Shown here piece by piece: positions 2,067 through 62,010 of a stretch of 64,000 nucleotides of DNA. The notes below the pieces were generated by a model. It was not told where the DNA came from and did not search any database. It saw nothing but the letters and a program-made list of their open reading frames with translations. Position 1 is the stretch's first letter. Each line of letters opens with the position of its first letter. Position numbers and translations under genes: made by a program. The stretch comes from Trichosphaerium sp. ATCC 40318 (lineage: Eukaryota; Protista; Tubulinea). Where the stretch lies: NCBI GenBank assembly GCA_038496445.1, contig JALMLS010000527.1, forward strand, positions 11,147 to 75,146, given 5' to 3'.

Positions 2067-2538
2067 ATAAGGTTAAAATGTAATTGTAGTTCTTGTTGAG
2101 TTAAAAGAGATCTTTACCCTTCACTGTTGTTCACGTGATATAACTAATACAATAGGTACAACGTCAGGTTTAAGTGACTTGAATTTACATTCCAAGTTGG
2201 CGTTGTTTCAAGGCTTTAGATAGCCGTGTGCTCAAAAATTTTGTGCTTTCTGGTTTTGATTGACATAGCAAAGTTCCAAACGAATACATGTTCGAAAAAA
2301 GCTTGTGCTACTCGAATAAATAAATTCAAATAGTTTGGCCCATTGTGTTTTTGATAAAATTTCGGTACGTTCTTTTAGATCTTCGCTGGATTGACAACAC
2401 AACAGCCAAAATCATGAAAGTCAAAGCAGTTCCCACATTTCCAAATGATTTGATTGAAAACCGTGATAAGTAATAGAATTCTTATTTACAACATCCTCTA
2501 CAATTGCAACAACTCTCTAAATCGTACAATACCTTGTC

Positions 2539-3316
2539 ATGGGAGAGCCTTCACCAAAAAAGGTACCGAATAAACTCTCATTTACAACTTGTGCTTTGTT
2601 CTAATTTCCAAAAATTATAGAGAAACACCTCCAAATATACACTTGTCAAAGATAGTAACCTCTTGTACGCTCTTCCCCTAGAGCTGCAACTGGATATTAT
2701 CGATCTAGATACAGAAGTATATTTAAAGTGGCCTCTGTTATCAAGATTCGCTGCAACAACCACCAGATTCGATGATAACATGCAAAAGCACGGGAAATGG
2801 CTTCGCCATAGATACATTAAGATTGATAATACAGTCGTAAAATCGTACCTCTTGGTTCAAGAGTTATGGAATCACAATGAGCTTAGCGGAACGTATCAAA
2901 CTTGGCATACCAATGGCCAACTCAAGGAGAAATTAAACTTTGTGAATGGCACAGAACAAGGAAAATACAAGGCATGGCATGATAATGGCCAACTAGAATA
3001 TGTGGTGTTTATGCGCAATGGTGAGGAACACGGAGAGTACAAAGAATGGAATGAAAAGGGTGACCCCATTGCAGCGGGACTCTATGTTGACGGTATCAAG
3101 CAGGGAACTTACAAAACCTGGAGCTACTTTTCTGGTACTGTACAAGAGAGCTATTACGAAAAAGATATACTGAAGTGCACATTGCAGAAGAAAGAGAGCG
3201 AAGATCATAAAATTGAGCATATTTATTCGTATGCAAATGATCAGGTTTCTGCCGTAATTTCAAGAGTGGAAAGAGATGGTACTCGTATTGAATTAGGCAA
3301 ACTAGGTCCTGTGTAG
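2539..3316 (+). CDS. F-box-like + MORN-variant (YwqK-like) repeat protein, copy 1
   Basis: Exon 1 MGEPSPKK, intron 2563-2620 (GTACCG..TAG), in frame with ORF 2663-3316. Contains LPLELQLDII and GxYxxWHxNGQL repeats. Confidence 0.85.
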
Positions 3317-3593
3317 GCAGAGCAGTTTCTTGTATCTAGAGATATAACGGCGCATAAAATAAAAACTTTGTTCGGTGAAGTCGGCTGTAGGGAGAAAAGC
3401 TAATACCTAAAGTATGGGTTGTTCTGCTCGTCTGTGTACATTATTATGATCACGTTGAAATGCAGCACAGGTTTCGTGTCACAATAGTAGAGACAATCTC
3501 AAACTTGCGCAAAATCTGTGTCGTGAAAAGCTAGTAAGTTTTATTGTGCTTGTTTCGTGAAAATACTTAATTTAATAAGCATTCGTTGATTAT

Positions 3594-5190
3594 TCAGTAT
3601 TCAAAGAGGTGTGGTATAGATTTATCAAACTGTCCCAATGAATAGTGTACAAATTCATTCTCATACGTAACGATAGAAGCCATGAAATTAAGGTGGCGGT
3701 ACTTTGGATAGCTAGGCCACTTACGTCCAGTCCTTCTTTTATCAACATACTTAAGGGTTTTTAGAGACAGAATAGCTTCGTCAGTGAGATGGTCACAATT
3801 CCTAATACCGAGTGTATGCACACCTATTAACGATCTAATACCTTCATCCGTAACTGATGTACTATTAAGATTAATAGCATGAACTCCTGCTAGTTTTTTA
3901 ATACCAATGTCTGTGACCAATGTGCGAGTGAGGTCGATTGTATGAACACCTGCAAGTGATTTGATTCCTTCATCTGTCACTTGAGTACCTCCAAGGTGAA
4001 TGGCATGAACACCCGCCAGAGTTTTAACACCTTCGTCTGTTACATTGGCACCCTGAAGGAAAATAGTATGAACGCCTTGTAGTGCTTTGATACCTTCATC
4101 TGTAACTGCAGTGCCATTTAGATAGATGGTATGAACTCCTGCAAGTTCCTTTACGCCTTCATCTGTCACCTTTGTATTATTAAGGAAGATAGTATGAACA
4201 CCTTTTAATGGTTTAATACCATCATCTGTAACCACAGTTTCATTAAGATATATTGTGTGTACTCCTGCAAGTGACTTAATACCTTTATCTGTCACTGCTG
4301 TGTAAGAAAGGTTAATGGAATGAACACCTTTTAATGACTTGATGCCTTCATCTGTCACGTTTTTGCAGTTTAAAAGATCAATGGTATGAACTCCTGCAAG
4401 TGCTTTGAGTCCTTCATCTGCAACTTTGGTGAGAGTAAGGTCAATTGTATGAACTCCTTTCAATGCCTTTATGCCTTCATCTGTAACATTGTTGCAACGA
4501 AAAAGAGAAATAAAATGCACTCCTTCAAGATATTTCAGATCACAGTCGTTGATAGCTCCCCAACCTCTGTATGTCAACTTACGGTTTCTTCTGAATGAAG
4601 TATCAATGTGTTTACATCCAGACAATAATGAATATAATGTATTGTTTTCAACATTCATCACAATGGCACTATTGTTCATGATACCTTTGTACTGTCTGAT
4701 CTTTAATATGTCTGGAATATCGTAAATATAGACTCTTTCATATCCAACAACCTGATGGATGATATCAGCCATCACACGACATGACTGAGCTACAGCAAAT
4801 CTTGATTTTGCTTCTGTATGACTTAAAATCGTAGAAATAATTTCTGGGAAATTGATGATATTCACAACCTTCTTCTGTGACCTCATTCCGCTATTGTTTG
4901 TTTTTAACAAGAAAACTTGAATTTAGAACGTACAGTCTTGTTTGTTTGTGTTTTGGTAGTGATACATCATGTCCTGTGCGCTGTTTGGTTCTTTTAACAT
5001 CAGGATCTATGTTTTTGAAGAGGTAATCGTCTAGTTGTTGCGCAAGCCTTGCATTTGCAGCGTTTAAGATAATTTCAAGTTGATTTGTGAATAGTTGTCG
5101 TTGGTTTGCAATGATTGTGCCAAACTCTTCTGCATAATTATTACAATAGTACGTGATAGCTTGATCTACTGAAACGCCTGAGAAATTCAT
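3594..5190 (-). CDS. N-terminal helical domain + F-box + 12 LRR (21-22 aa) protein, copy A
   Basis: ORFs 4891-5190 and 3594-4910 are joined in frame by a 43-nt GTACGT..TAG intron (4891-4933). F-box-like FPEIISTILSH..AVAQSCR and LAGVHTIDLxxTxVTDEGIKA repeats. Confidence 0.88.
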
Positions 5191-5444: not shown

Positions 5445-8400
5445 CTACCGTCTTGATTGACGAGAACCAGGTTTATTGGGTGGTTGCGGCCTAAACGGAG
5501 ACTGATGCACATTATGATGTCTTTGATTCATTAATGGATTTGGAATAAAATGTCCATTTGGAGCCGTATTCGGAGACCTGTGTGGCGGCATGTTTGGCAT
5601 GTTTGGAGGCATGTGTGGCGACCTATGAGGCGCCATGTGTGGCTGCATATGTGGTGGCATATGTGGTGGCATTTGTGGTGGCATGTGCGGTGGCATTTGT
5701 GGCATTGGCATAGCTGAGTATGGAATATGTCCGTGCTGGGGTGGTGTCATCATAGGTGGTCTTTGTTGGTGTAAGGGCATAGGATGATGCATTGGAGGAG
5801 GCATGCCACGACCTGGTGGACCAGGTCTGAAAGGAGAAGCTCCATGATTTGTATTTCGGTAATTACGTATTGGAGTTACTTGAGGTGAATTAAGATTTGG
5901 AAGCCTAGGTACTTGAAAATTATTTAAAAGTGGGTTCCTTATTACAGGTGAACTTCCCAAGCTATTATGCCTTCGCACAACCGATGATGGACTCTGGTAT
6001 CTACCCAATGGCGACTCACTATAAAATCGTCCCCAATGATTAGGTGTACGTCTACTGAGTGGTGTACTGTAGCCAGATCTTTGTAGGTAAGGAGAAGGCG
6101 TTTGTTTGTCTGCATATTTTTGGGTGTAAAATTTGTGTGCAGTGACTGGTGTGCTTGGTACTGAAGGTGCTGGAGATTCTGGTCCTTTGTACTTGAAGCT
6201 ATAGTCAGTCTCAACTTTGAATCCATGTTTTTCAATAAATGCTATCCAATTACTCCAATGTTCATCTGAAGAAAGAGTCTTACTGTCACCTGGAAGTATC
6301 AAATTTAGTTCTCCTGCTAAACAAAATATTCAATGTTGTGCGTACCAACAACAATTAGACCACGTTTAGCACGTGTCAAAGATACATTCAAACGTCTCCA
6401 ATCTTTAAGAAATCCAACAGTTTTCTACATTAATTCAGGGTTAGTTACAGGCAGGACAAGGTTGGTTATATAAAGGTGGCAATACCTTTTCGTTTGCTCT
6501 AACAGTTGATATAACAATAATATCTTTTTCTTGTCCTTGAAAGGAATCTACAGTTGCTATATTCACTACAAAGACATAATGAGTTGCAACTCGAAGTGGG
6601 TGTAAAACAGAAATGTTCAAAGAGGTCCTAACGATGTACGTACATCCTCCTGCAAGTTGTGTTTTACCATGTTCACCTTCATCGTCTCTATCATTAACCC
6701 TTTTCTCTAAAAAGTATTTATCTGCTTTGAACCTACTCCGTAAAAGCTTTGCTTGTCCTCTATAAGGTGTAATAACACCTTAAGTATCTAGTAAGTAAAA
6801 CGTTGTACATCAATCTATAAGTGTGAAAACGTTGATCGTTCTAAACGTACCAATATCAGAACGTGCAACTTCATTATTTTTCAGCAGCTCCCTTACTATT
6901 TGCACTACACGATTTGCTTCTTCTTTATTTGTAATGGACTTTCCACGACCCAAAGATAGCTCAACTGTTTCTGCCTAAAAAAAGTAAATTTTTTGGATTT
7001 GTTAGTCTCGACGACGCACCAAGTCAATGAATACAATAGGTTTTCCGCGAGGAAATCCAAGAGGTACAGGGCGTTCAGCTTTGCTAATTTTTAATTTAGT
7101 AAAGAGTAAATGCAGTCAATCATAAGGAAAACATGAAAGAAGTTTAACGTTTTTTTAAGTGTCCACGCACGTGACGCCATCTGTAATATTTCCTTCATAA
7201 AACTCCTTTGATGGAAACGCAGCTATACTAGGGTGCATCCTATTTACCACAACATAAGTTCATAACCAAATACCCAATAATAAACATACCTGTACTGAAC
7301 ATTCATCATGATTGGCTTAACACCATCTTCAACTAACCTGCCAAAAAGCGATTTGGCTAATCCTCCATCCTGAGCCTTACGACTTCTCACTGTGGGTGGT
7401 AACTATTAAAAATTTAGTCATTGTCATTGCACTTTAGGACAGTGGATAGTACTTGATGGTGATCACCAAACATGACAAGCTTTTGTGCTTCATGAGATAA
7501 AGGAACAAGTGCAGCCGGTTCAATACATTGCGCTGCTTCATCCATTACCACCACTGGAAAGTACATTGATTCTAGAACGTGACTACCAGCTCCAATAGCT
7601 GTAGAGCAAATAACTTCAGCCTCCCTTAAGATATCTCTTGTGATTGCCTTTGAAGTCGTATTGATTTCAGCTTTTCTCTTTCTCTTTTGATCTAGAATGT
7701 TTCGTTAATTTCTTTGAAAAACACGAGCTAGTACGTGCCATAAGTAAATACAGATTGTGACTGATCATAAGTATCACGAAGCTTCATTAATTTTTTATAT
7801 CTAGGATCTTCTTTTACCAAGGCATCGAGCGTTACGCCTTGTACCTCAGGACTTGCCTTGATAATAATTAAGTAATCTGTGAATTTGAGGCTAAAAGTGT
7901 ACCTTTACAGCGCTACCTACACGGACTGCCTTAACGCCCATGGTCAATAAACCTTCAAGTATATTGTCTGTTGCAACATTGGTAAATGCACAAACAAGTA
8001 TAGGTACATTTGCTTCTTTGTACTTATCGACTAGAAGCCTCAGTATTACTGTAGCCACATGCTTACAATAATGTGAGTAAGAAAGTAATCGTACTATCTC
8101 TCGGTACCGTTTTACCAGTTCCAGGAGGACCTTGCACAAGTACAACAGCGTTGTTGAATACTGTAAGATGATTAGACTAGAATTAGAGGAATGTAACTAT
8201 TATCACCTTTCTCTATAACTTCGTGTTGGCTCTTATTAAGTCGGAACATTGATAAGTCTTCTTCTCTGCGTTACTGTTAATGGTTGAACCGAATATGTTG
8301 ACACGTACGATAACTTATGTAGAGACTTCAACTTAGATGGCTTGGTGGCTGTACTACGTTTTAATTTTGTGTTTATTATCAAGTTAGCGATTGGGTTAAC

Positions 8401-14758: not shown

Positions 14759-15154
14759 AAAATGATATACCTTTGTAATGCAATTGTAGAGTAGTTGAAT
14801 AAAAAATGTACAATAGTGATTGTAATTTTATTGTTACTAACAAGGTTTGACTTAACTCTTCCGGGATAATCCTTGTTTTATTTCGCGTAAAGAAATCTGT
14901 ACTGGTGTTCACACACATTGACCTTGCGATTGTGTAAAACGAGGGTCCATACTATTGGTAATCGTGATGGCTTAACAGACAACTTTTCGTTAACTGAATA
15001 TCAGTAAAACTTAAGGTTATCATCCAACTTCACCAAGTTTTGAGGGAAAATACTGATATTCTGTACGATATGGAAAATAATAAGGTATTCCACATAAATA
15101 AAACACACAATTATAATTGACAAAAAGTAGAACCAATCAGATGTTTGCTATCTT

Positions 15155-15754
15155 ATGGACATTCCAGTGGAATTACAGCTCGATATCATTGATTTAGACC
15201 CTAAATTGTATTTAAAGTGGCCGCTTCTATCCAAACAAGCGGCAATGGTAACAAGGTTTGATGAAGAGTTGAAGAAACACGGGAAATGGGTTAAATACTA
15301 CATAAGCCAGTATTTTTCTAAAAAAATATACATCTTGTGCCAAGAGCATTGGGTCCATGGTGTGATGAATGGAGAACATAAAAAGTGGTATGATACTGGC
15401 CAATTACTTGAAGTATCTAATTTCATCGATGGTAACGTCTACGGAGAGTACAAGAAATGGCATTTAAATGGATACCAGAGTATAGCATGCACTTTCATTG
15501 ACAATAAAATGGAAGGAGTTTACAAGCAGTGGCACCATAATGGCGTACTAGAGATGGAATGTTATTTTGTTAATAATAAACTGAATGGAGAATGTAAGAA
15601 ATGGTGCATCAATGGTAAGTTAGTAGAGCAATGTCATTATGTAAATGGAAAGAAACATGGCTTATGTAAGACATGGGTTCAAAACGGGACTGTCAGACAT
15701 GAAGAACAATACACATATATGCATGGTAATCAGAAAACGTGTAATATCACGTGA
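15155..15754 (+). CDS. F-box-like + MORN-variant repeat protein, copy 2 (intronless)
   Basis: The N-terminal domain MDIPVELQLDIIDLDPKLYLKWPLLSK..TRFD..KHGKW is shared with the 2539 and 32806 genes. About 5 GEYKKWHxNG repeats. Confidence 0.88.
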   Translation: MDIPVELQLDIIDLDPKLYLKWPLLSKQAAMVTRFDEELKKHGKWVKYYISQYFSKKIYILCQEHWVHGVMNGEHKKWYDTGQLLEVSNFIDGNVYGEYKKWHLNGYQSIACTFIDNKMEGVYKQWHHNGVLEMECYFVNNKLNGECKKWCINGKLVEQCHYVNGKKHGLCKTWVQNGTVRHEEQYTYMHGNQKTCNIT

Positions 15755-15785
15755 TCATCTTCTAAAATAAAGATATCAAGGTCTA

Positions 15786-16172
15786 TTCTATTAGAACAAT
15801 TTCTTGCAGAGCGTATGGAAAGTCAGTACGCTGCGCCTTTCTTTTTTTTTCGCAAAGAAATATATTACACCTTGGCGTGGCGGTGGATTCTGGCTTTATG
15901 CTTGAACTCATCGGTGCTTCCGAGGACGAAGAACAAATATGGCATAAATGCCACAAAGAGGTACACTGATCCCATAGGAAGTACTACGAGAAGAATCGTA
16001 GAAGGAGCTAGACAGTACAAACAATAAGTTGCAATAAACGTGACCTATGGTAAGTTTTTGTAACTTCTTTCATTGCTTAAACCAGACAAAAGTACTGTCA
16101 TTTTGTCCATGGCTGAGGATGGTTGTTCACGTAAAAGAACTTCGAATAGGAATATAAATTGCTAAATTGTTC
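15786..16172 (+). repeat. Truncated duplicate of the 3' end and downstream flank of the gene at 60625-61766
   Basis: Colinear nucleotide similarity to 61540-61898, including the shared tract GTAACTTCTTTCATTGCTTAAACCAGACAA. Contains frameshifts and a stop. Confidence 0.9.
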
Positions 16173-16266
16173 AGAGTACTTTTTTTTATTTCAGAAATAT
16201 TTTCAACGATTGCACTACGTGCAGTTGGTTACAAAATCAAAAATAGGTATTTTTTAAAAGATGTAA

Positions 16267-31453: not shown

Positions 31454-32347
31454 ATGCAAAACATCCTATATTTACCAAATGAAATACTGGCTCATGTTTT
31501 AACACAAATACAAACTTCTAGATTTGCAGCAGCTCAAAGTTGTTCTACCTTCGCATCACTCATTCACAACGTAGTTGGGTACACGCACATTATAATATCA
31601 AACGTTAAAACAGCGAAAACAATCAGCAAATATCCAGGAATACTTAAACAAACAAGAGTTAAGGTGAAAGCCACACGTGCAGAATATCTGTGGGGCAATA
31701 ATTTAGAAACAAATGAAAGTGTTAATGCGCTTGCAGGTGTCCGTACTATTGACCTTAGCTATACCAACGTGACAGATGAAGGTGTAAAAGCACTTTCAGG
31801 CGTTCATTGTATAAATCTTCGTAGAACAAAAGTATCAGATATGGGATTAAAAACTTTGGTAGGTGTACATACTATTGATCTTAGATATTGTCGCCATGTG
31901 ACTGATGAAGGAATCAAATTTCTGGCTGGTGTTCATACTATTGACCTTGATAGTACTCAAGTAACAGATAAAGGTGTTAAAGAACTTGCAGGCGTTCACT
32001 CCATTAATCTTTGTAAAACAAGTGTAACAGATGAAGGCATTAAAGTACTGGGAGGTGTGCATACTGTTGATCTCTCTTATACAAAAGTAACAGACGAAGG
32101 TTTAAAATCACTGGCAGGTGTTTATACCATTGATCTTTGTTCCACTTTAGTTACTGACAAAGGCATTAAAGCTCTTTCAGGCGTGTATAAAATTTTTCTT
32201 ATATGCACAAGAGTTACAGATGAGGGTATCAAGGCACTAATGGGGTCTCATACCATTGATCTACGGCAAACAAGAACAACGGTTGAAGGTATTAACGTGC
32301 TGAAAGGTTCTAGAGTTTATCATGGCTTTTCTATTTATGAATTTTAA
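31454..32347 (+). CDS. F-box + 9 LRR protein, copy B (intronless, no leader exon)
   Basis: F-box ILYLPNEILAHVL..AAAQSC and LAGVHTIDLxxTxVTDEGIK repeats. Confidence 0.9.
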   Translation: MQNILYLPNEILAHVLTQIQTSRFAAAQSCSTFASLIHNVVGYTHIIISNVKTAKTISKYPGILKQTRVKVKATRAEYLWGNNLETNESVNALAGVRTIDLSYTNVTDEGVKALSGVHCINLRRTKVSDMGLKTLVGVHTIDLRYCRHVTDEGIKFLAGVHTIDLDSTQVTDKGVKELAGVHSINLCKTSVTDEGIKVLGGVHTVDLSYTKVTDEGLKSLAGVYTIDLCSTLVTDKGIKALSGVYKIFLICTRVTDEGIKALMGSHTIDLRQTRTTVEGINVLKGSRVYHGFSIYEF

Positions 32348-32805
32348 CAGCAATGCACACTTTACATCTACGACAATATGAATAACTCATCTTACCTACA
32401 GAACATTGTATATTCTGTATGAGTAGGATTTCGACTTAACACAAAGCAATCGGGTTGAGCTGAAGTAAAACAAAATATCCCTTGCGATACAAGCCCATGC
32501 TACATTGTAACTCCAATAAACGTTGCTAGTTTACTTGTAAAAAGTTGTCAAAGTCATAGTGTTCATTACTCAAAAACTTACGATTGAAATCTAACTTCAT
32601 TCTAGAACTGAATAAATATAGTTTGTTTGCACCACACAATCCAAGCAGGTAATCGGGATTTTGTTTCAAAAGGCTGAAGTCAAAGATGTTCTCAGTTTAA
32701 CAGGAATCATGATTGATTGATAGAGCGTGATAAGTTACATATTTTTACTTAACCTTCAACTGTTGCAACACCTCTTGAAACCTCCAACAACACAAATATA
32801 CGCAC

Positions 32806-34557
32806 ATGGAACCTTCAACTGAGAAAAAGGTACGTCAAATAACTCTTCAACCTTTTCACCTTTGGTTTTGTTCTAATCAAACGATAAATAGGTTAAACCC
32901 ACTTACGAAACATACGTGGAAGAGGAGAAGCATCCAATACGACTTCCAGCAGTTTTGCAACGAAAAATTATCAAAATGGAACCAGATCTTTATTTAAAAT
33001 GGCCTCTGATTTCTAAAACCGCGGCGATGGCGACCAGATTCGATGCTAACTTCAGGAAACACGGAGAGTGGGACCGACATAGAATTTTGCTCGTGATTGA
33101 TAACACAATCGTAAAAACGGAAATTGTAAAAGAGCAATATTGGACACATGGCATACTATACACCCCCCAACCAGAATGCCGTAAGTTACTTGAACTTCCT
33201 GGCGAACTGCAACTAGCTATCGCCGATGTAGACTACGAGATTAATATAAAATGGGCGCTCTTGTCAAAAGAGGCAGCGATGAACACGAGGTTTGATAGTG
33301 ACCTGAGGACACGCGGTAAATGGAAACGCTACCTCCTTTGTAACTACGATAACTATTCAAAGGCTAATCCACGTCTTTTAATACAAGAGCATCGGCAGTG
33401 CAATCTGCTCCATGGCTTACAAGAGATGTGGCACTACAATGGCCTACCGAGACAGACGGGCAGTTATGACAACAATAGTCGCGAGGGGGAGTTCAAAATT
33501 TGGTATGAGCATGGCCAACTTAACGAGCAGTGTCACTACGTAAATCATAAACGCGAGGGCGACTATAAATCGTGGCATGCGAATGGCAACTTGAGCGAGC
33601 AATGTCATTATGTAAATGATAAACGCGAAGGCGAGCGCAAAACTTGGTTTGATAGTGAGGATGGTGATCTATGGACGATATCCAATTACTCCAACGGCGT
33701 GTATGATGGAGAGTACAAAGAGTGGCACCTAAATCGTAAGCTTGAAGTGCATTGCTATTACAAAGCGGGAAATCTACAAGGGGAAAGCAAAAAGTGGTAC
33801 AATGATGGTCAACTACAGGAGCATTGTTACTACTCAAACAATGTACACGTGGGTGAATACAAACGTTGGTACATTAATGGCCAAATGGAGGAGCATAGCG
33901 TCTATAAAAACGGACAACGAGAAGGAGATTATACAATTTGGTACAGAAATGGCCAGAACAGAGTTATGTCATTGCCTAAATGATACAACCAGCACACGCA
34001 TTTCTTGGCATTCCAACGGCCAGACAGAGGAGCGATACACGTTAGTGAACGGTATGAAGCATGGAGAGTACCAAAGGTGGTTTTCCAATGGCCGCTTGAA
34101 TGAGGTTAGTAGCTACGAAAATGGGGAAAAAGAAGGAGAGTACAAAAGCTGGGACTACAATGGCCAATTGCGTGAGCATGGCGATTATGTAGCTGGTGAA
34201 CGAGAATATTACAAGAGTTGGTACAGCAATGGCCAATTGGAAGAGCATGAGTTTAATGGGGAGACAAAAATATGGTTTAAAAGTGGTCAATTGATGGAGA
34301 ATTACATTCACGCCAATGATGAGTATGATGTAGAGTACAAAAGGTGGTATGAAAATGCGCAATTGCAAGAGCATGGTCATTACGTAAATGGTGAGTATCA
34401 CGGAGAGTGGAAAAAGTGGTGGGCCAATGGTAATAAATATTCAGTGTATAATTATATCAATGGCAAGCGTGAGGGAAAGTGCACACTATGGTTTAGTGAT
34501 GGCAGAACAGAAAAGGAGATGTATTACAAAAATGACATTCTCCACTGCGCAAAGTAA
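32806..34557 (+). CDS. Double F-box-like + long MORN-variant array, copy 3; frameshift near 33957
   Basis: Exon 1 MEPSTEKK, intron 32830-32891. Two tandem LPxxLQxxI..KWxLxSK..TRFD domains. The MORN array continues in the +1 frame to 34557. Confidence 0.82.
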
Positions 34558-34675: not shown

Positions 34676-36246
34676 CTAGAGGTAAGGTATACCTATACGG
34701 CACAGTCCCAAAGAGTATTCTATAAAACAATCACGATAGTCAACACGGCTAATACATGCTCTTCTAAGACGACGATCAGTATCCCTAGAAAATCTAGGAG
34801 TGGAGGTAGACTTTTCAACATATCGAAGGCCTTTTAGTGATAGAAAAGCATCGTTAGTAATATGATCACAGTTTTTAAGACCAATTATATAAACACCTGA
34901 CAACGCTTTTACTCCTTCGTCTGTAATTGAAGTACCATCAAGATTAATGGCATGCACCCCTACAAGTGCTTTGATGCCTTCATCTGTCACTCTAGTACGA
35001 GCAAGATCAATAGCATGAACACCTGCAAGTGCTTTTATACCTTCATCTGTCACCAAAGTATCTCCAAGGTGAATTGTATGAACCCCTGCGAGTGCTTTTA
35101 CACCTTCATCTGTAACTGAAGTATTATTGTTAAGGAAAATGGTATGAACACCTGCGAGTGCTTTGACTCCTTCATCTCCTACTGAAGTATTTCTAAGGAA
35201 AACAATATGAGCACCTCTCAATGCTTTAATACCTTCACTGGTCACTGAAGTTCTATCGAGGTAAATGGTATGTACTCCTCCAAGCTCTTTTAAACCTTCA
35301 TCTGTGACATGAGTGCCAGTGAGTTTAATAGTATGAACACCCTTTAATGACTTGATGCCTTCATCTGTCACGTTATTGCAGTTTAAAAGATCAATTGTAT
35401 GAACTCCTGCAAGGGCTTTGATTCCTTCATCTGTCACCAATGTGGAAGTAAGATCAATTGCATGTACACCTTTTAGTGCCTTGAGGCCACTGTCTGTGAT
35501 ATTGATACAACGATAAAGAGAAATAGAATGTACTCCTGCAAGTGATTTAAGATCACAATCATTGATAACTCCATATTTTACATTATATAACTCTGGGTTT
35601 CTTTTGAACGAAGTATCAATGTATTTACATCCAGATAACAATGAATATAATGTATTGTTTTCAACATTCATCACAATGACGCTATTTTTCATGATACCTT
35701 TGTACTGTCTGACCTTTAAGATGTCTGGGATATCGTAAATATAGACTCTTTCATATCCAACAACCTGATGGATGATATCAGCCATCAAACGACATGACTG
35801 AGCAACAGCAAATCTTGATTTCGCATCTGTATGACTTAAAATCGTAGATATAACTTCTGGTGGGAAATTGATGATGTTCACTACTTTATGTGAACTTGTT
35901 TGTGTTCTTTTAAACTGTTAGCACAAACTATTTACAGTTTCAAAACGCACTTTCTCTTTTGCTTGTGTTTTGGTAGCGATAGGTCGTCGAAATGTGTCAC
36001 AGGTATAATAGTTGCATTGTTGGAATGTACTGGAGGCTGTTTGGATGAGATAGCGCTTGTATCAATACTTTTAGAGAGATATTGGTCGAGTTGGTGTAAA
36101 AGGTTCTTGTTTGCAATGTTTAAGATATTTTCAAGCTGGTTTATGAACACTTTGCGTTGTTTTGTGGTGATTTTACTAAACTGATCTTTGTGGCTGTTGT
36201 GATAGTACGTGATTGCTTGATCTACTGAAATACCTGGTAAGCTCAT
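34676..36246 (-). CDS. N-terminal helical domain + F-box + 11 LRR protein, copy C
   Basis: Exon 1 MSLPGISVDQAITYY.. is joined in frame by intron 35907-35950 (GTGCGT..CTAAC..AAG) to ORF 34676-35881. Paralog of 3594-5190. Confidence 0.88.
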
Positions 36247-36800
36247 CGTTTGAGGTGTTTGATTGTTAAAAGAAGAAAGTACAAAAATAGAAATCAAGTT
36301 CGCTGTTAAGTACAGTTACATCTTGATAAAAGTAAAACCACTGTAACCTACCCTACAATGTACGCCAAGCAAAATATTGCAGTGTTGGTCTACGAAGTGT
36401 AACTGTCGCCAAGCCACATTTTTACAAACTAGTTGAGTCTTTTTCCTTGCACATAAATGCGTTAGTAGGGACTCGCAACTACAGTCAAGAGACTCATTGT
36501 ATCTAAGTACATGACAATATTGTGACACTTGCAACTCAGTCAGCGACTCATTATATCTAAGGGGAATGTTATAACACGGAAGTGTAAAGATGACTAGTTC
36601 GAATCTACAAATTGCTCTAATTCATTCCAGTCGCGTGGATAACGTCTGTTTAGGCGATTTGATCCACTATTAGCTGTTTTTTGTCACAATAAAATGACCG
36701 TTGGAAAATTTTTTTGTTTGACGAGAAAAACGAAAGTCTACAAATTTCGTTGTCAAATACTCGATCAACTGTATTTCGCGGTAGTCCACGCGTAATCACA

Positions 36801-39800
36801 AGTACGTTTCATTCGCGTTATCTAAACTCAATTATTTAATTTTCGATTGCTTTTTTTTCAAAACAGTGCTTAAACGATTCTCTTATACTCAATAGTGGCG
36901 GGAATACCAAGCGAAGAGCTCTTTGGAGATTTCCTACAAAAAGGTTTTGTAGACAAGACAGCCGTACTTACATACGAACCAAAGGAGAAAAAGGATGGTA
37001 TTAAGGTATGTTTACCATTGGTTTTGTGTTTTGCAAGTTGCTTTTTTCCTTACCACTTATTACGTATTTAGTTTCTAGTTGATGGACCAAAACACGAAGA
37101 ACCAGAGGTTTTTGATAACGGCGATGGTTCTTGGGATATCGGTACGTAATATGCCTTTTTTGGTTAATGTTGTCCCAATTGCAATATAAAACGCAAACAA
37201 ACAAACCTTATTTACGGAAATGTAGAGTGGACGCCAAAAGAGGCTGGAGACTTCTCAATCGTGGTAGTTGCAGATGGTGAAACAATCCCTGGTTGCCCGT
37301 TTATTTGTTCTGTCGCAGCTTGTACGCGACACAAATCCTTCAACGTAACACGAGCTTTCTGACTTTTTTTCTCCATAGCTGAAGAAGAAGCAATTGCAAA
37401 TCAAGGCGCTCTATCTGTAACAACAAAAGCATCCATTTTTGGGCCTGGCACGTGGGGAGAGAGTTTGACTGGCGATGGAGAAGCTCAATCTATCACTCTA
37501 GTACCACAGACAGCAGACGGTACAGTGTTTATAAATCAAGGCTTCTTGCTAATAAAAAAATAGGTGAAGCGATTTCATTGCAAGAAAAAGACTTAAACGT
37601 ACTTATTACAGGACCAGAAGGTGTATCTACAGAGGTATTCGATAACGGTGATGACTCATGGGACGTTGAGTTTGAGGTACTTCAAAATTAATCAAACAGT
37701 CTCTACTCATCTAACAATATTGCAAAGGCACCAAAGACAGAAGGCACATACAATCTTGTTTGCACATATCAAGGGAAGCCTTTATACGATCCAATACCTC
37801 TTGCTATTGGACCATCCAAACCTGCACCATCAGACAAGTTGTATTGTTTAATTGAAGGAAACAATCCCATTCATGATATTGATCGCGTTGCGTACACGAT
37901 CACATTCAAAGAAGAAGTAAAGGAAGAAGATATTTCAGTAACACTAGCAGCAGGTTCGTTCACTTTTTCTTTTTTTATTTGCTGAATACTCGTGTTGTTT
38001 ACATGTTACCCCCTAGGCGACATTAAAGTCATTGTTGAGCTTTATCCTATTGAAGCAGAAGACTTGGATGATGGCGTTGCAGCAGCTTATGATGTAGAGT
38101 TTGAACTAAAGGAAGAAGGATCGTATACCATGGATTTTGTAGTTCGCGGTGAAACAGTTGATGGATCTCCAATTAAGTTCGTCACCAAAGGTTACAAAGA
38201 AAACGCTAAAGAGTAAGTAATTACGAAATTAACAAGTACTAAGAGTATTATAGAGCAAAACCTGAAGTAGTAACGCCAGAGGTTGATGCTAAAGCAGAAG
38301 AAACAGCAGATGAAGAATCTGCTCCTGTTGAAGAAAACGTAGCAGAGGAAGAAGATGAGGAAGAAAAACGTGCAGAAGCTGAAGCTGAAGCTGCACGTAA
38401 AGCAAAAGAAGAGGAAGATCAGAAGGTTGCTGAGGAAGAAGCTGCACGTAAAGCTGCAGAAGAAGAGGCTGCAAAAAAAGCCGCTGAGGAAGAAGCTGAA
38501 CAAAAAGCAGAGCAAGAACGCATTGCAAAGGAAGCAGAAGAGGCTGCACAGAAGGCTGCAGAGGAAGCACAAAAGAATGAACCTTATCATCCTAACTGCA
38601 CCATTGAAGGTGACGGTCTTGATGCAGAAAAAATTAAGATAGGAAGTAAGAAATGGCCTTGCTTTAGTGTCACGTTCAAGAACAAAAACGGTACGATTCC
38701 TCAACAGATTCCTCCTTTTAATACTTTTTAAGGCGATGTTGTTAAAGTTCCAAAGCAATCAATACGAACTAGTGTCGATGGTCCTCTTTCACCTGAAACA
38801 CGTGTATTTGAGAACGGTAATGGGACATATGATGTTGAGTGGTGCCCAAAAGTACGATCTTGTGGATTTTTCTGTTTTGCTCTTATCTAAATGGTTTATT
38901 AGTGCCCTGGTAAACACTCTGTATTTGTACAATGGGGTGGCAAGAATGTTGGCGATAGCCCATTTGAGATTGAAGTCATTGATTGGCTAAAACGAAAGCT
39001 AGAAGAACAGAAAAAAAAGGAAGCAGAAGAGGCCGAACAAAAGGCCGCTGAGGAAGAGGCTGCACGTAAAGCCGCTGAAGAAGAAGCTGCTAAAAAAGCT
39101 GCTGAGGAAGAAGCAGCAAAAAAAGCTGCTGAAGAAGAAGCAGCTCGTAAAGCTGAGGAGGAAGAAGCTGCCAAAAAGGCCGCTGAGGAAGAGGCTACAC
39201 GTAAAGCCGCTGAAGAAGAAGCTGCTAAAAAAGCTGCTGAAGAAGAAGCTGCACGTAAGGCTGCAGAAGAAGAGGAAGCAAAGAAAGCACGAAAAGCAGA
39301 AGAAGAGGCTGCCAACAAAGCTGCTGAGGAAGAAGCTGCACGTAAAGCCGCTGAAGAAGAAGCAGCAAAAAAAGCTGCTGAAGAAGAAGCTGCTCGTAAA
39401 GCTGAGGAGGAAGAAGCTGCACGTAAAGCTGCTGAGGAAGAAGCTGCACAAAAAGCAGAACTCCAACGTAAAGAAGAAGCAGAGCAAAAAAAGAAGCAAG
39501 AGCTAGAAACTCAAAAGGCTGAAGAAGAGAAGAAACAAGCTGCCGAAGCAAATAAACCAATAGTATTGGAAACAACAACAAGGTACACCAATCATTTTTT
39601 ACAAAAGTCCTCGTTAACGCGACTTGTGTAGTGTCCAAGAAACCAAACCTCAAGAATTTGATAAATTCGTATTAGACGAAGAAATGCACTCAATACAAGA
39701 GCGTATTGATTACAACAAACGGGTACCTTTAACCTCTTTTTTTATTTCGCGTTGTGACCCTAATAAACTCTATAGATGTCACTAAAAGCAACAGCATCTG

Positions 39801-60507: not shown

Positions 60508-60624
60508 TATTTGCATAAATTAATACAAGCGAGAATGACCATGACTGACAAACAGCTGTGAGATATTTTGCAATTGCACAGCACTCAACAACGCACACAT
60601 TATCCAGCCAACGTATTCTACAAA

Positions 60625-61766
60625 ATGCAAAGGTCACTAAAGAGACAAAACAGCCGTTCATTTATTGGGTACTACTCCCTTGACACGCTGCCAGACTCAG
60701 TAATAGAGACCTTACTGCGGTGTCTACACAGTAGACGGCGAATTCGAGTCACATGCAAGAAGTTCCGAGATATGACCTTGCAGGTGTTACAAAAGCAACT
60801 ACTCGAACACCTCAAAAGGCTTGCCGAGCATGCGCAGAGTGCCACTGAGCATCTACGTCTCAGAAAGGTTCCACAAGAGGAAAAGAATTACCACAACGCA
60901 AACTTGCGTCGTAATATCGTCAACGATACGCAAACGCGGCCTGTGTTAGTCTGGAACGTTGGTAAGTAAAGCTTTTTTTTGGTTTTTTTTCACTTGTTTT
61001 TTTTTCCTTGGCTAAGTTTAGAATTTAGGAACAAACAGCGGAGTTGTATCGCTACCTCAACTTCCGCGTAATGTTTTGAAGAAATGGTAGTGAAGTTTCT
61101 GCGAACAGTACCAAATGGCGACGAGTGCTGGTTCACGTGGAAATTACCAAACTACCTTAGAACTAAAGCGTTTCAGCTGAAATGCTTTGTTCCTGTTGAA
61201 CACCACACAGGCATGTTTGTTTAGTGGCTTTTTTTTTTGCTTTAAATTAGCGGTTTTCTCTGCAATTGTGAAAACTCGATTTTTTTTTTGGCTTTTTTTC
61301 CTCGCTTTGACTCTGTTGTAATTTCTAATTTCTTGTAGACGCTCTAAAAAATATGGCGTTATACAAAAGAGCGTATAACGAGGGTTGTTTCCTTAACGCT
61401 GCGCGTCAGTTAGCTGGTATACTGACGCTAGAAGACATTGGTGGCTTTCTGGTCTCAGACTTTTACGCCATGTTAAAGATAGGCAGGGTTGCCTTATTTA
61501 AAAAGAACGTCTCTTTAGATGTTCTATATAAACATCTTGTTCTATTGGAACAGTTTCTTGCGGAGCGTATTGAAGGTCAGTACGCTACACCGTTCTTTTT
61601 CCGCCAAGGAAATATATTCCATCTTGGGGTGGTGGTGGATTCTGGCTTTCCGAGGAGGAAGAAAAAATATGGCATAAATGCCACAAGGAATACATTGAAC
61701 CCGACAAGGAGTACTATGAGAAGAATCGTAGAAAGAGAGCTAGACAGTATAAACAATAACTTGTAA
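60625..61766 (+). pseudogene. F-box-like gene, probably disrupted
   Basis: SLDTLPDSVIETLL..RVTCKKFR, with introns at about 60962-61028 and 61211-61338. A frameshift near 61075 and a 22-nt deletion relative to the 15.9 kb copy. Confidence 0.6.
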
Positions 61767-62010
61767 TAAACGTGACCTTTAATAAGTTATTGTAACTTCT
61801 TTCATTGCTTAAACCAGACAAGAGTACTGTAATTTTGTCCATGGCTCACTGAGGAGGGTTGTCCACGCAAAAGAACTTTGTTTGTTGTTAAATTGTTCGT
61901 CTTCTTTTTTTTTTCTTCCTCCGTGTTTTGCTCTGACTTTCATGTTTTTCTTTAATTGTAATGTACGCAAATTCTTCATGCTTGAAACAAAGAGGACTTA
62001 GTCTTATTTG

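Follow-up and report, generated by a model that had tools for sequence, protein, structure and literature searches.

In a 64,000-nucleotide (nt) stretch of DNA from the marine amoeba Trichosphaerium sp. ATCC 40318 (contig JALMLS010000527.1; hereafter the window, from whose first letter all positions are counted), we found a small block of leucine-rich repeat (LRR) and MORN-repeat genes present in two copies, A and B, 30 kb apart. In each copy a MORN gene on the + strand lies tail-to-tail with a gene on the - strand that encodes a helical domain, an F-box, and LRRs. The explanation that we favor, with a probability of about 0.6, is an ancient local duplication of a small F-box-gene block within two hugely expanded, giant-virus-related families, and not a proven new two-gene system. 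Common descent of the two blocks is argued by the same gene order and orientation, the homologous introns, the shared region 5' of the MORN genes, and the presence of a rare helical N-terminal domain in both LRR genes.

Two copies of a three-gene block

An earlier note on this DNA had claimed that the same two-gene arrangement occurs twice, that both gene pairs keep a single intron at the same position, that a motif upstream of the MORN gene is conserved, and that each copy has a + strand LRR gene upstream. Each of these claims was borne out. Using every cassette piece as a query in tblastn searches of the window, we located three MORN loci, all on the + strand (2621-3313, 15140-15751, and 32910-34551), while the cassette pieces likewise gave three F-box/LRR loci (3597-4910, - strand; 31454-32344, + strand; 34679-35896, - strand) and two copies of the helical N-terminal domain (4894-5190 and 35935-36297, both - strand). 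Three genes and not two make up the duplicated unit, in the order LRR(+) - MORN(+) - LRR(-). In copy B, the upstream gene is an intact F-box/LRR gene of 297 codons (LRRup; 31454-32347, +) that lacks the helical N-domain. Its counterpart in copy A is a remnant (228-350, +), which consists of two degenerate 21-residue LRR units in different frames; six-frame translation placed a frameshift between them, and tblastx matched the remnant to 31862-31915.

The MORN gene of copy A (MORN-A; 2539-3316, +; 239 aa) starts with a short exon (2539-2562, encoding MGEPSPKK), followed by a 58-nt phase-0 intron (2563-2620) and a second exon (2621-3316). Its product would have a predicted F-box-like three-helix N-domain, followed by MORN_2 repeats (34 bits in Pfam). 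The corresponding gene of copy B (MORN-B; 32806-33983, +) is built in the same way, with exon 1 at 32806-32829 (MEPSTEKK), a 62-nt intron at 32830-32891, and exon 2 from 32892, but it carries two tandem N-domains before the MORN_2 repeats. Its frame is lost near 33950, with a stop at 33981-33983, while the repeat array continues in another frame (33985-34557, +), which stays open for 190 codons and holds intact MORN_2 repeats (56 bits). The block was duplicated as a unit, but MORN-B, with its second N-domain and its frameshift, is no clean copy of MORN-A. We take the loss of frame to be either a recent frameshift or an assembly error. A tiny intron that would restore the frame was considered and ruled out: the sole GT..AG candidate is 21 nt long, a multiple of three.

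The large LRR genes are uninterrupted in both copies between ATG and stop once spliced. LRR-A (3594-5190, -; 517 aa) has a first exon (5190-4934) that encodes the helical N-domain, a 43-nt phase-2 intron (4933-4891; GTACGT..TAG), and a second exon (4890-3594) that encodes the F-box and then ~13-16 LRR units of 21-22 residues. LRR-B (34676-36246, -; 508 aa) has exon 1 at 36246-35951, a 44-nt phase-2 intron at 35950-35907, and exon 2 at 35906-34676; it has one LRR unit fewer than LRR-A. In the MORN pair as in the LRR pair, both the positions and the phases of the introns are homologous. The splicing of the LRR genes is supported by MMETSP transcripts of a related organism (P0001-P0003), because these run through the junction with the helical domain, the F-box, and the LRRs in one frame.

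The composite motif upstream of MORN-A (TGATTGA..CGTGATAAGT..TTGCAAC; 2451-2510, +) lies ~77 nt 5' of the ATG. A pattern search of the window found it only at the promoters of MORN-A and MORN-B, with a chance expectation of 0; the second occurrence, upstream of MORN-B (32710-32769, +), is also indicated by the similarity of the 5' regions. From -100 to the end of intron 1, 135 of 182 positions are identical between the copies (z = 15 versus shuffles), and this is the sole non-coding stretch that is alike in the two blocks.

Divergence of the copies

Apart from that MORN 5' region, DNA similarity between the copies is confined to coding sequence. No similarity above that of shuffled sequence was seen in the spacer between the tail-to-tail genes, in the LRR intron, in the DNA 5' of the LRR genes, or farther upstream of the MORN genes, and tblastx beyond the block revealed no credible match between the flanks of the two copies. 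LRR-A and LRR-B are 65% identical as proteins, with a synonymous divergence (dS) of ~1 over most of the gene and a ratio of nonsynonymous to synonymous divergence (dN/dS) of ~0.3; identity between their helical domains is 48%. Between the N-domains of the two MORN genes, identity is ~47% (41 of 87 aligned residues) and dS is saturated. Because dS is ~1 and neither the flanks nor the intergenic DNA can be aligned, we judge the duplication to be old. An origin of the blocks as mobile elements was ruled out, because no repeats flank the blocks and nothing outside the genes is similar.

One part of the LRR gene departs from this picture. Over the F-box/linker tract (4576-4847, -, versus 35589-35860), the DNA of the two copies is 93% identical and dS is ~0.13, as opposed to ~1 outside the tract, which suggests either gene conversion between the paralogues or an unusual constraint at the nucleotide level.

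A history that would account for these data starts with an ancestral block of ~4-5 kb, LRR(+) - MORN(+) - LRR(-), which would have been copied once, long ago, within the same chromosome region, with birth-and-death evolution of both copies afterwards. The upstream LRR gene of copy A has decayed to a remnant, and the MORN gene of copy B has acquired a second N-domain and shows a frameshift, while the large LRR genes of both copies have stayed intact under purifying selection (dN/dS ~0.3), with their F-box/linker part possibly homogenised or specially constrained.

Given the frameshift and domain duplication in MORN-B and the wreck of the upstream LRR gene in copy A, one might ask whether the cassette genes are decaying, unexpressed duplicates without a present function. 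The published draft genome of Trichosphaerium sp. (Tekle 2023, PMC10521059) bears on this question. In the part of that annotation covered here, scaffold 00231 has the order TRSP19987 (best hit Harvfovirus8_11, one intron), TRSP19993 (UFD1), TRSP20000 (F-box, Indivirus), and TRSP20002 (best hit Harvfovirus36_1, one intron), which fits the window order LRR-A, UFD1, LRRup, [MORN-B], LRR-B. If the window is indeed scaffold 00231, then TRSP19987, TRSP20000, and TRSP20002 are marked there as undetected in the transcriptome. However, the frames of LRR-A, LRR-B, LRRup, and MORN-A are intact over 239-517 codons, dN/dS is low across a dS of ~1, and family members are expressed in a related organism, as the MMETSP transcripts attest. 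We therefore consider wholesale decay to be quite improbable and retain the old duplication of a block whose genes were in part maintained.

The LRR proteins as candidate SCF adaptors

All of the LRR genes match Pfam LRR_6 well above its cut-off (70-77 bits versus 23.4; 77 bits for LRR-A). The F-box is less uniform at the level of sequence: LRR-B exceeds the curated cut-off for F-box PF00646 (22.8 bits versus 20.5), while the F-box-like scores of LRRup and LRR-A (18.1 and 14.3 bits) both fall below the cut-off. A profile of the LRR family gave weak PDB matches to the F-boxes of AnkB, FBXW7, and FBXO22 (E 0.1-0.4). When exon 2 of LRR-A was modeled (pLDDT 79), the top PDB match, which extends across the entire model, was FBXL2 in its SKP1 complex (6o60_C; E 5e-15, TM 0.59/0.65), followed by FBXL17. 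The model also matches ribonuclease inhibitor, NLRP, and internalin, which share the solenoid fold.

The LRR product would thus be an FBXL-like protein with a lineage-specific helical N-domain, short LRRs, and variable positions on the concave face of the solenoid. Like human FBXL2, FBXL17, and Skp2, it has an N-terminal three-helix F-box directly before the LRR solenoid. In contrast to these receptors, whose repeats are ~26 residues long, the amoeba unit has 21-22 residues (consensus GVHTIDLxxTxVTDEGIKALA) and begins with GVH; LRR-A and LRR-B carry an extra helical N-domain of ~60 residues on its own exon; and the sequence identity between LRR-A and FBXL2 is only 17%. Variability among the LRR units is concentrated at positions 6, 8, 9, and 11, on or just after the beta strand, and these positions would lie on the concave face in a receptor-like manner. 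No credible relative of the helical N-domain was found (Atlas score 0.74); its sole PDB match, a chemoreceptor (E 0.009), was taken as chance.

The tripeptide GVH opens nearly every 21-residue unit of 3597-4889 (-), and would form a histidine ladder along the solenoid. To our knowledge, no LRR class described so far shows it.

A probable cryptic F-box in the MORN family

All three MORN genes of the window score above the cut-off for MORN_2 (PF07661; 34-64 bits versus 29.6), as do the repeats of the family at large, in which 47 of 52 members match. The N-domain that precedes these repeats has the consensus LLxLPxELQxxIxxxDxxxYxKWPLLSKxTAxTxRFDxxLxKHGKW, whose LP motif is nearly invariant (L and P each at least 90% conserved). 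A sequence search of the PDB with this domain yielded no match. Its AF2 model, built from a 51-sequence alignment (pLDDT 88.5), has three short helices that run into the first hairpin. In a structural search against 48,161 PDB chains, this model matched 24 chains with Z >= 2, and ~18 of the 24 are F-box domains of SKP1 complexes, including Cdc4, AnkB, FBXL17, Fbw7, cyclin F, FBXL2, beta-TrCP, Skp2, COI1, and others, with a best Z of only 3.6. Foldseek E-values were above 1 and not significant; Arabidopsis F-box proteins recurred among the top matches. These results lend good but not conclusive support to the idea that the N-domain is probably a cryptic F-box, and the MORN product would then be small, its cryptic F-box leading into the beta-hairpins of the MORN_2 repeats.

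Both types of product are putative substrate receptors of SKP1-CUL1-F-box (SCF) ubiquitin ligases. The proposal of two SCF adaptors is plausible, on the strength of the Pfam F-box match of an LRR gene, the FBXL2-SKP1 complex as the top structural match, and the F-box-like predicted fold of the MORN N-domain; for the LRR genes, an adaptor role may plausibly be read from the models. The part of the published annotation covered here lists a Skp1-modifying glycosyltransferase in this genome (PMC10521059), which suggests that SKP1 is present in this amoeba.

The distribution of the MORN family was explored with an N-domain profile in an exhaustive search of 1.84 billion representatives, which returned only 49 proteins and no viral protein. 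Those that were aligned all have the layout of N-domain plus MORN_2. The source was looked up for 20 of the 49, and 19 of these are protist transcripts (MMETSP or JGI records of ~1-2 kb), the other being an ENA metagenome contig. The closest proteins to the cassette proteins are MMETSP transcripts, so family members are expressed in a related organism. A word-based protein search with the MORN repeats gave just five unnamed matches, and a metagenomic contig with a distant MORN-family member (L003) is without an LRR gene.

In automatic annotation, amoeba genes of this kind are named after the bacterial MORN_2 'YwqK family antitoxin', with which they share the repeat family PF07661. The bacterial proteins, however, are without the F-box-like N-domain, and the amoeba genes are without a toxin-antitoxin context; the name is an annotation artefact.

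Kinship with giant viruses and the host context

Trichosphaerium sp. has a genome with 37.69% GC and a mean intron length of 75 nt (Tekle 2023, PMC10521059). The window, with ~38% GC and very short introns, reads as eukaryotic DNA. The same study reported ~1,570 giant-virus-like gene models, among which F-box and MORN are the commonest domains, and its authors interpret genes of this kind as transferred from viruses. For both families, the 'domesticated viral genes' of the earlier note are a reading that was already in print.

As the earlier note had stated, giant viruses hold many relatives of these genes. Among viral proteins, the closest structural match to LRR-A is Hyperionvirus A0A3G5A7S5 (36% identity over ~390 residues, Foldseek E 1.7e-27), followed by F-box/LRR proteins of Tupanvirus, Catovirus, Pithovirus LCPAC101, and Harvfovirus. 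The viral proteins resemble the amoeba LRR proteins in architecture and in their short LRR type, but the amoeba genes have a spliceosomal intron and lie among host genes. In the parts of the published tables covered here, the giant-virus names matched by LRR-A are the best hits for hundreds of Trichosphaerium genes, with Harvfovirus8_11 accounting for at least 182 entries in Table S3 (PMC10521059). For the MORN gene, the nearest ESM Atlas clusters are from Nucleocytoviricota (score 0.94, 176 shared features); 72% of their members have MORN_2 and 10-19% have a Pfam F-box, unlike the amoeba N-domain, which escapes the Pfam F-box models. Outside the lineage, the closest relatives of LRR-A and of the MORN gene are viral, the MORN N-domain profile excepted. 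Both families are massively expanded in the amoeba and are found also in Klosneuvirus-type giant viruses.

Two NCBI LRR matches (P0043 and P0009) that had been considered Harvfovirus proteins turned out to be bacterial proteins from metagenome-assembled genomes. Scans of viral contigs with the MORN N-domain alignment, the MORN protein, and LRR-B confirmed nothing. A Logan contig from SRR28401850 (L005, 5716 nt) has an F-box/LRR_6 gene 40% identical to LRR-B, beside DUF723 and OrfB_IS605/TnpB-like genes on the same strand and in a compact arrangement; it looks like a giant-virus fragment.

The viral names among the nearest LRR relatives, the Nucleocytoviricota neighbours of the MORN gene, and the published classification as viral transfers would all be expected if the blocks were not resident host genes but fragments of a giant-virus genome that had become endogenous and was inert or newly inserted. 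Yet a spliceosomal intron occupies a conserved site in each gene, the GC content of the blocks equals that of their surroundings, and UFD1, a PH-domain gene, and a PI3/4-kinase, all of them ordinary for a eukaryote, are their neighbours in the window, with no viral hallmark gene seen. Nor does a dN/dS of ~0.3 fit inert DNA, and the exhaustive MORN N-domain search led almost only to protist transcripts and to zero viral contigs. We regard an endogenised viral fragment as highly improbable. Because of the introns, the host-like composition, and the ordinary host neighbours, we consider the cassette genes to be resident genes of a family shared with viruses.

Pairing by descent or by selection

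If the blocks descend from one ancestral block, the tail-to-tail pairing of the MORN and LRR genes would have been inherited from it, and there is no sign in the window of selection for pairing. The two pairs count as one observation, because both trace to one duplication event. Pairing is not obligatory either, given that a third MORN-family gene with the same N-domain (MORN3; 15155-15754, +) has no adjoining LRR partner and that LRRup is unpaired. What the earlier note had called a co-duplicating module was indeed copied as a unit, but in the window this reflects a single old event, beside which one MORN gene and one LRR gene stand without a partner. When judged by annotation names only, further MORN/LRR adjacencies occur in the published gene table (PMC10521059), but solitary MORN genes are more numerous. 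In three arbitrarily chosen parts of that table, an LRR-type gene neighbours ~2-3 of nine MORN-type loci, with the rest solitary or ambiguous.

Several results weigh against a simple, single duplication of a block of F-box genes. In a weakly resolved tree of 51 N-domains, those of MORN-A and MORN-B do not group as sisters, and therefore a simple single duplication needs many unsampled copies or a later replacement; this placement is also compatible with an old event plus many unsampled paralogues. In addition, the non-coding MORN 5' region is conserved even though synonymous sites are saturated. The F-box in the MORN family is called from a predicted model and a low Z, with Pfam and hhalign both blank: none of the 52 members matches Pfam F-box at E <= 0.1, and hhalign of the N-domain against the F-box of the LRR genes gave a probability of 0.3%, with no profile similarity. 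Thus, the earlier label 'F-box-like' for the MORN gene stands at the level of predicted fold, while the sequence models match nothing. Finally, the gene table includes TRSP10581 (YwqK-type MORN) adjoining TRSP10582 (Harvfovirus8_11-like, 503 aa), a further MORN-type/LRR-type adjacency between TRSP11220 and TRSP11221, and a trio, TRSP11227-11229 (456 aa viral-like, 201 aa, and F-box/LRR 284 aa), that mirrors the three-gene block. By annotation names, MORN/LRR adjacency recurs above random placement, and selection for the pair could be responsible.

Such selection would make the convergent MORN/LRR pair a functional unit, in which two SCF receptors act jointly, for example by sensing as a pair or by regulating each other, and multiply as a module while giant viruses or intracellular bacteria oppose them in an arms race. 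The arrangement has been retained in both copies despite a dS of ~1, the MORN regulatory region is conserved, and the adjacencies listed above add to these; moreover, variable LRR positions on the concave face fit diversifying recognition, and homologues of both families occur in giant viruses. However, adjacency persists without selection once a block has been duplicated, most MORN-type loci in the table parts are without an LRR-type neighbour, orphan MORN and unpaired LRR genes lie in the same window, and MORN-B is rearranged and frameshifted while its LRR partner is intact. From the table, pairing appears recurrent but not the rule, and one block spread by segmental duplication explains the recurrence without functional coupling. 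For this reason, we consider a selected pair unlikely.

A bolder form of this idea, which we hold to be very doubtful, is that selection has kept the two receptors together as a unit of a ubiquitin-based defence in the amoeba. Amplified blockwise, this unit would have diversified on its repeat surfaces in an arms race against giant viruses whose genomes hold decoy versions of the receptors. Co-regulation of the pair and its attachment to one and the same SKP1 would then be maintained by the conserved MORN 5' region together with the homogenised F-box/linker of the LRR genes.

An old block duplication followed by birth and death, the explanation that we prefer, has parallels in the F-box superfamilies of plants and nematodes, where there are likewise large expansions specific to a lineage, duplicates both in tandem and by segment, remnants that persist as pseudogenes, and variation at the positions that face the ligand. 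The amoeba families differ in belonging to Amoebozoa, in using other repeat scaffolds, and in being shared with giant viruses.

Other features of the window

A stretch of ~400 nt is repeated at ~85% identity at 15780-16180 and 61530-61930. The 15.8-kb copy is a fragment just 3' of the orphan MORN gene, and the 61.5-kb copy is the 3' end of a gene, with an upstream open reading frame (ORF; 60568-60969) that has an F-box-like motif (LDTLPDSVIETLLRCL...). Directly upstream of LRR-A, an ORF at 5445-6302 (-) is rich in proline, methionine, and histidine (MPPHMPPQMPPH repeats), and after it an SF1-type helicase motif is found near 6441-6620. At 38348-39510, tandem units of 27 nt, with at least 18 copies in register, lie inside overlapping - strand ORFs and probably encode a low-complexity repeat protein. 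Rfam found no RNA family match in the window.

Significance

The expansion and the virus kinship of both families were already known (PMC10521059), and the duplication itself is an ordinary old segmental event. To this the analysis adds exact models of the genes, the block structure of the duplicated unit, the F-box/linker tract of low dS, and the conservation of the region 5' of the MORN genes. The gene models cover two very large amoeba families that are shared with giant viruses. Also new is that a MORN family automatically annotated as 'YwqK antitoxin' probably bears a cryptic F-box. For at least one subfamily, the unit of spread is a small block of several genes. Were the pairing functional, it would indicate a ubiquitin-based recognition system in amoebae.

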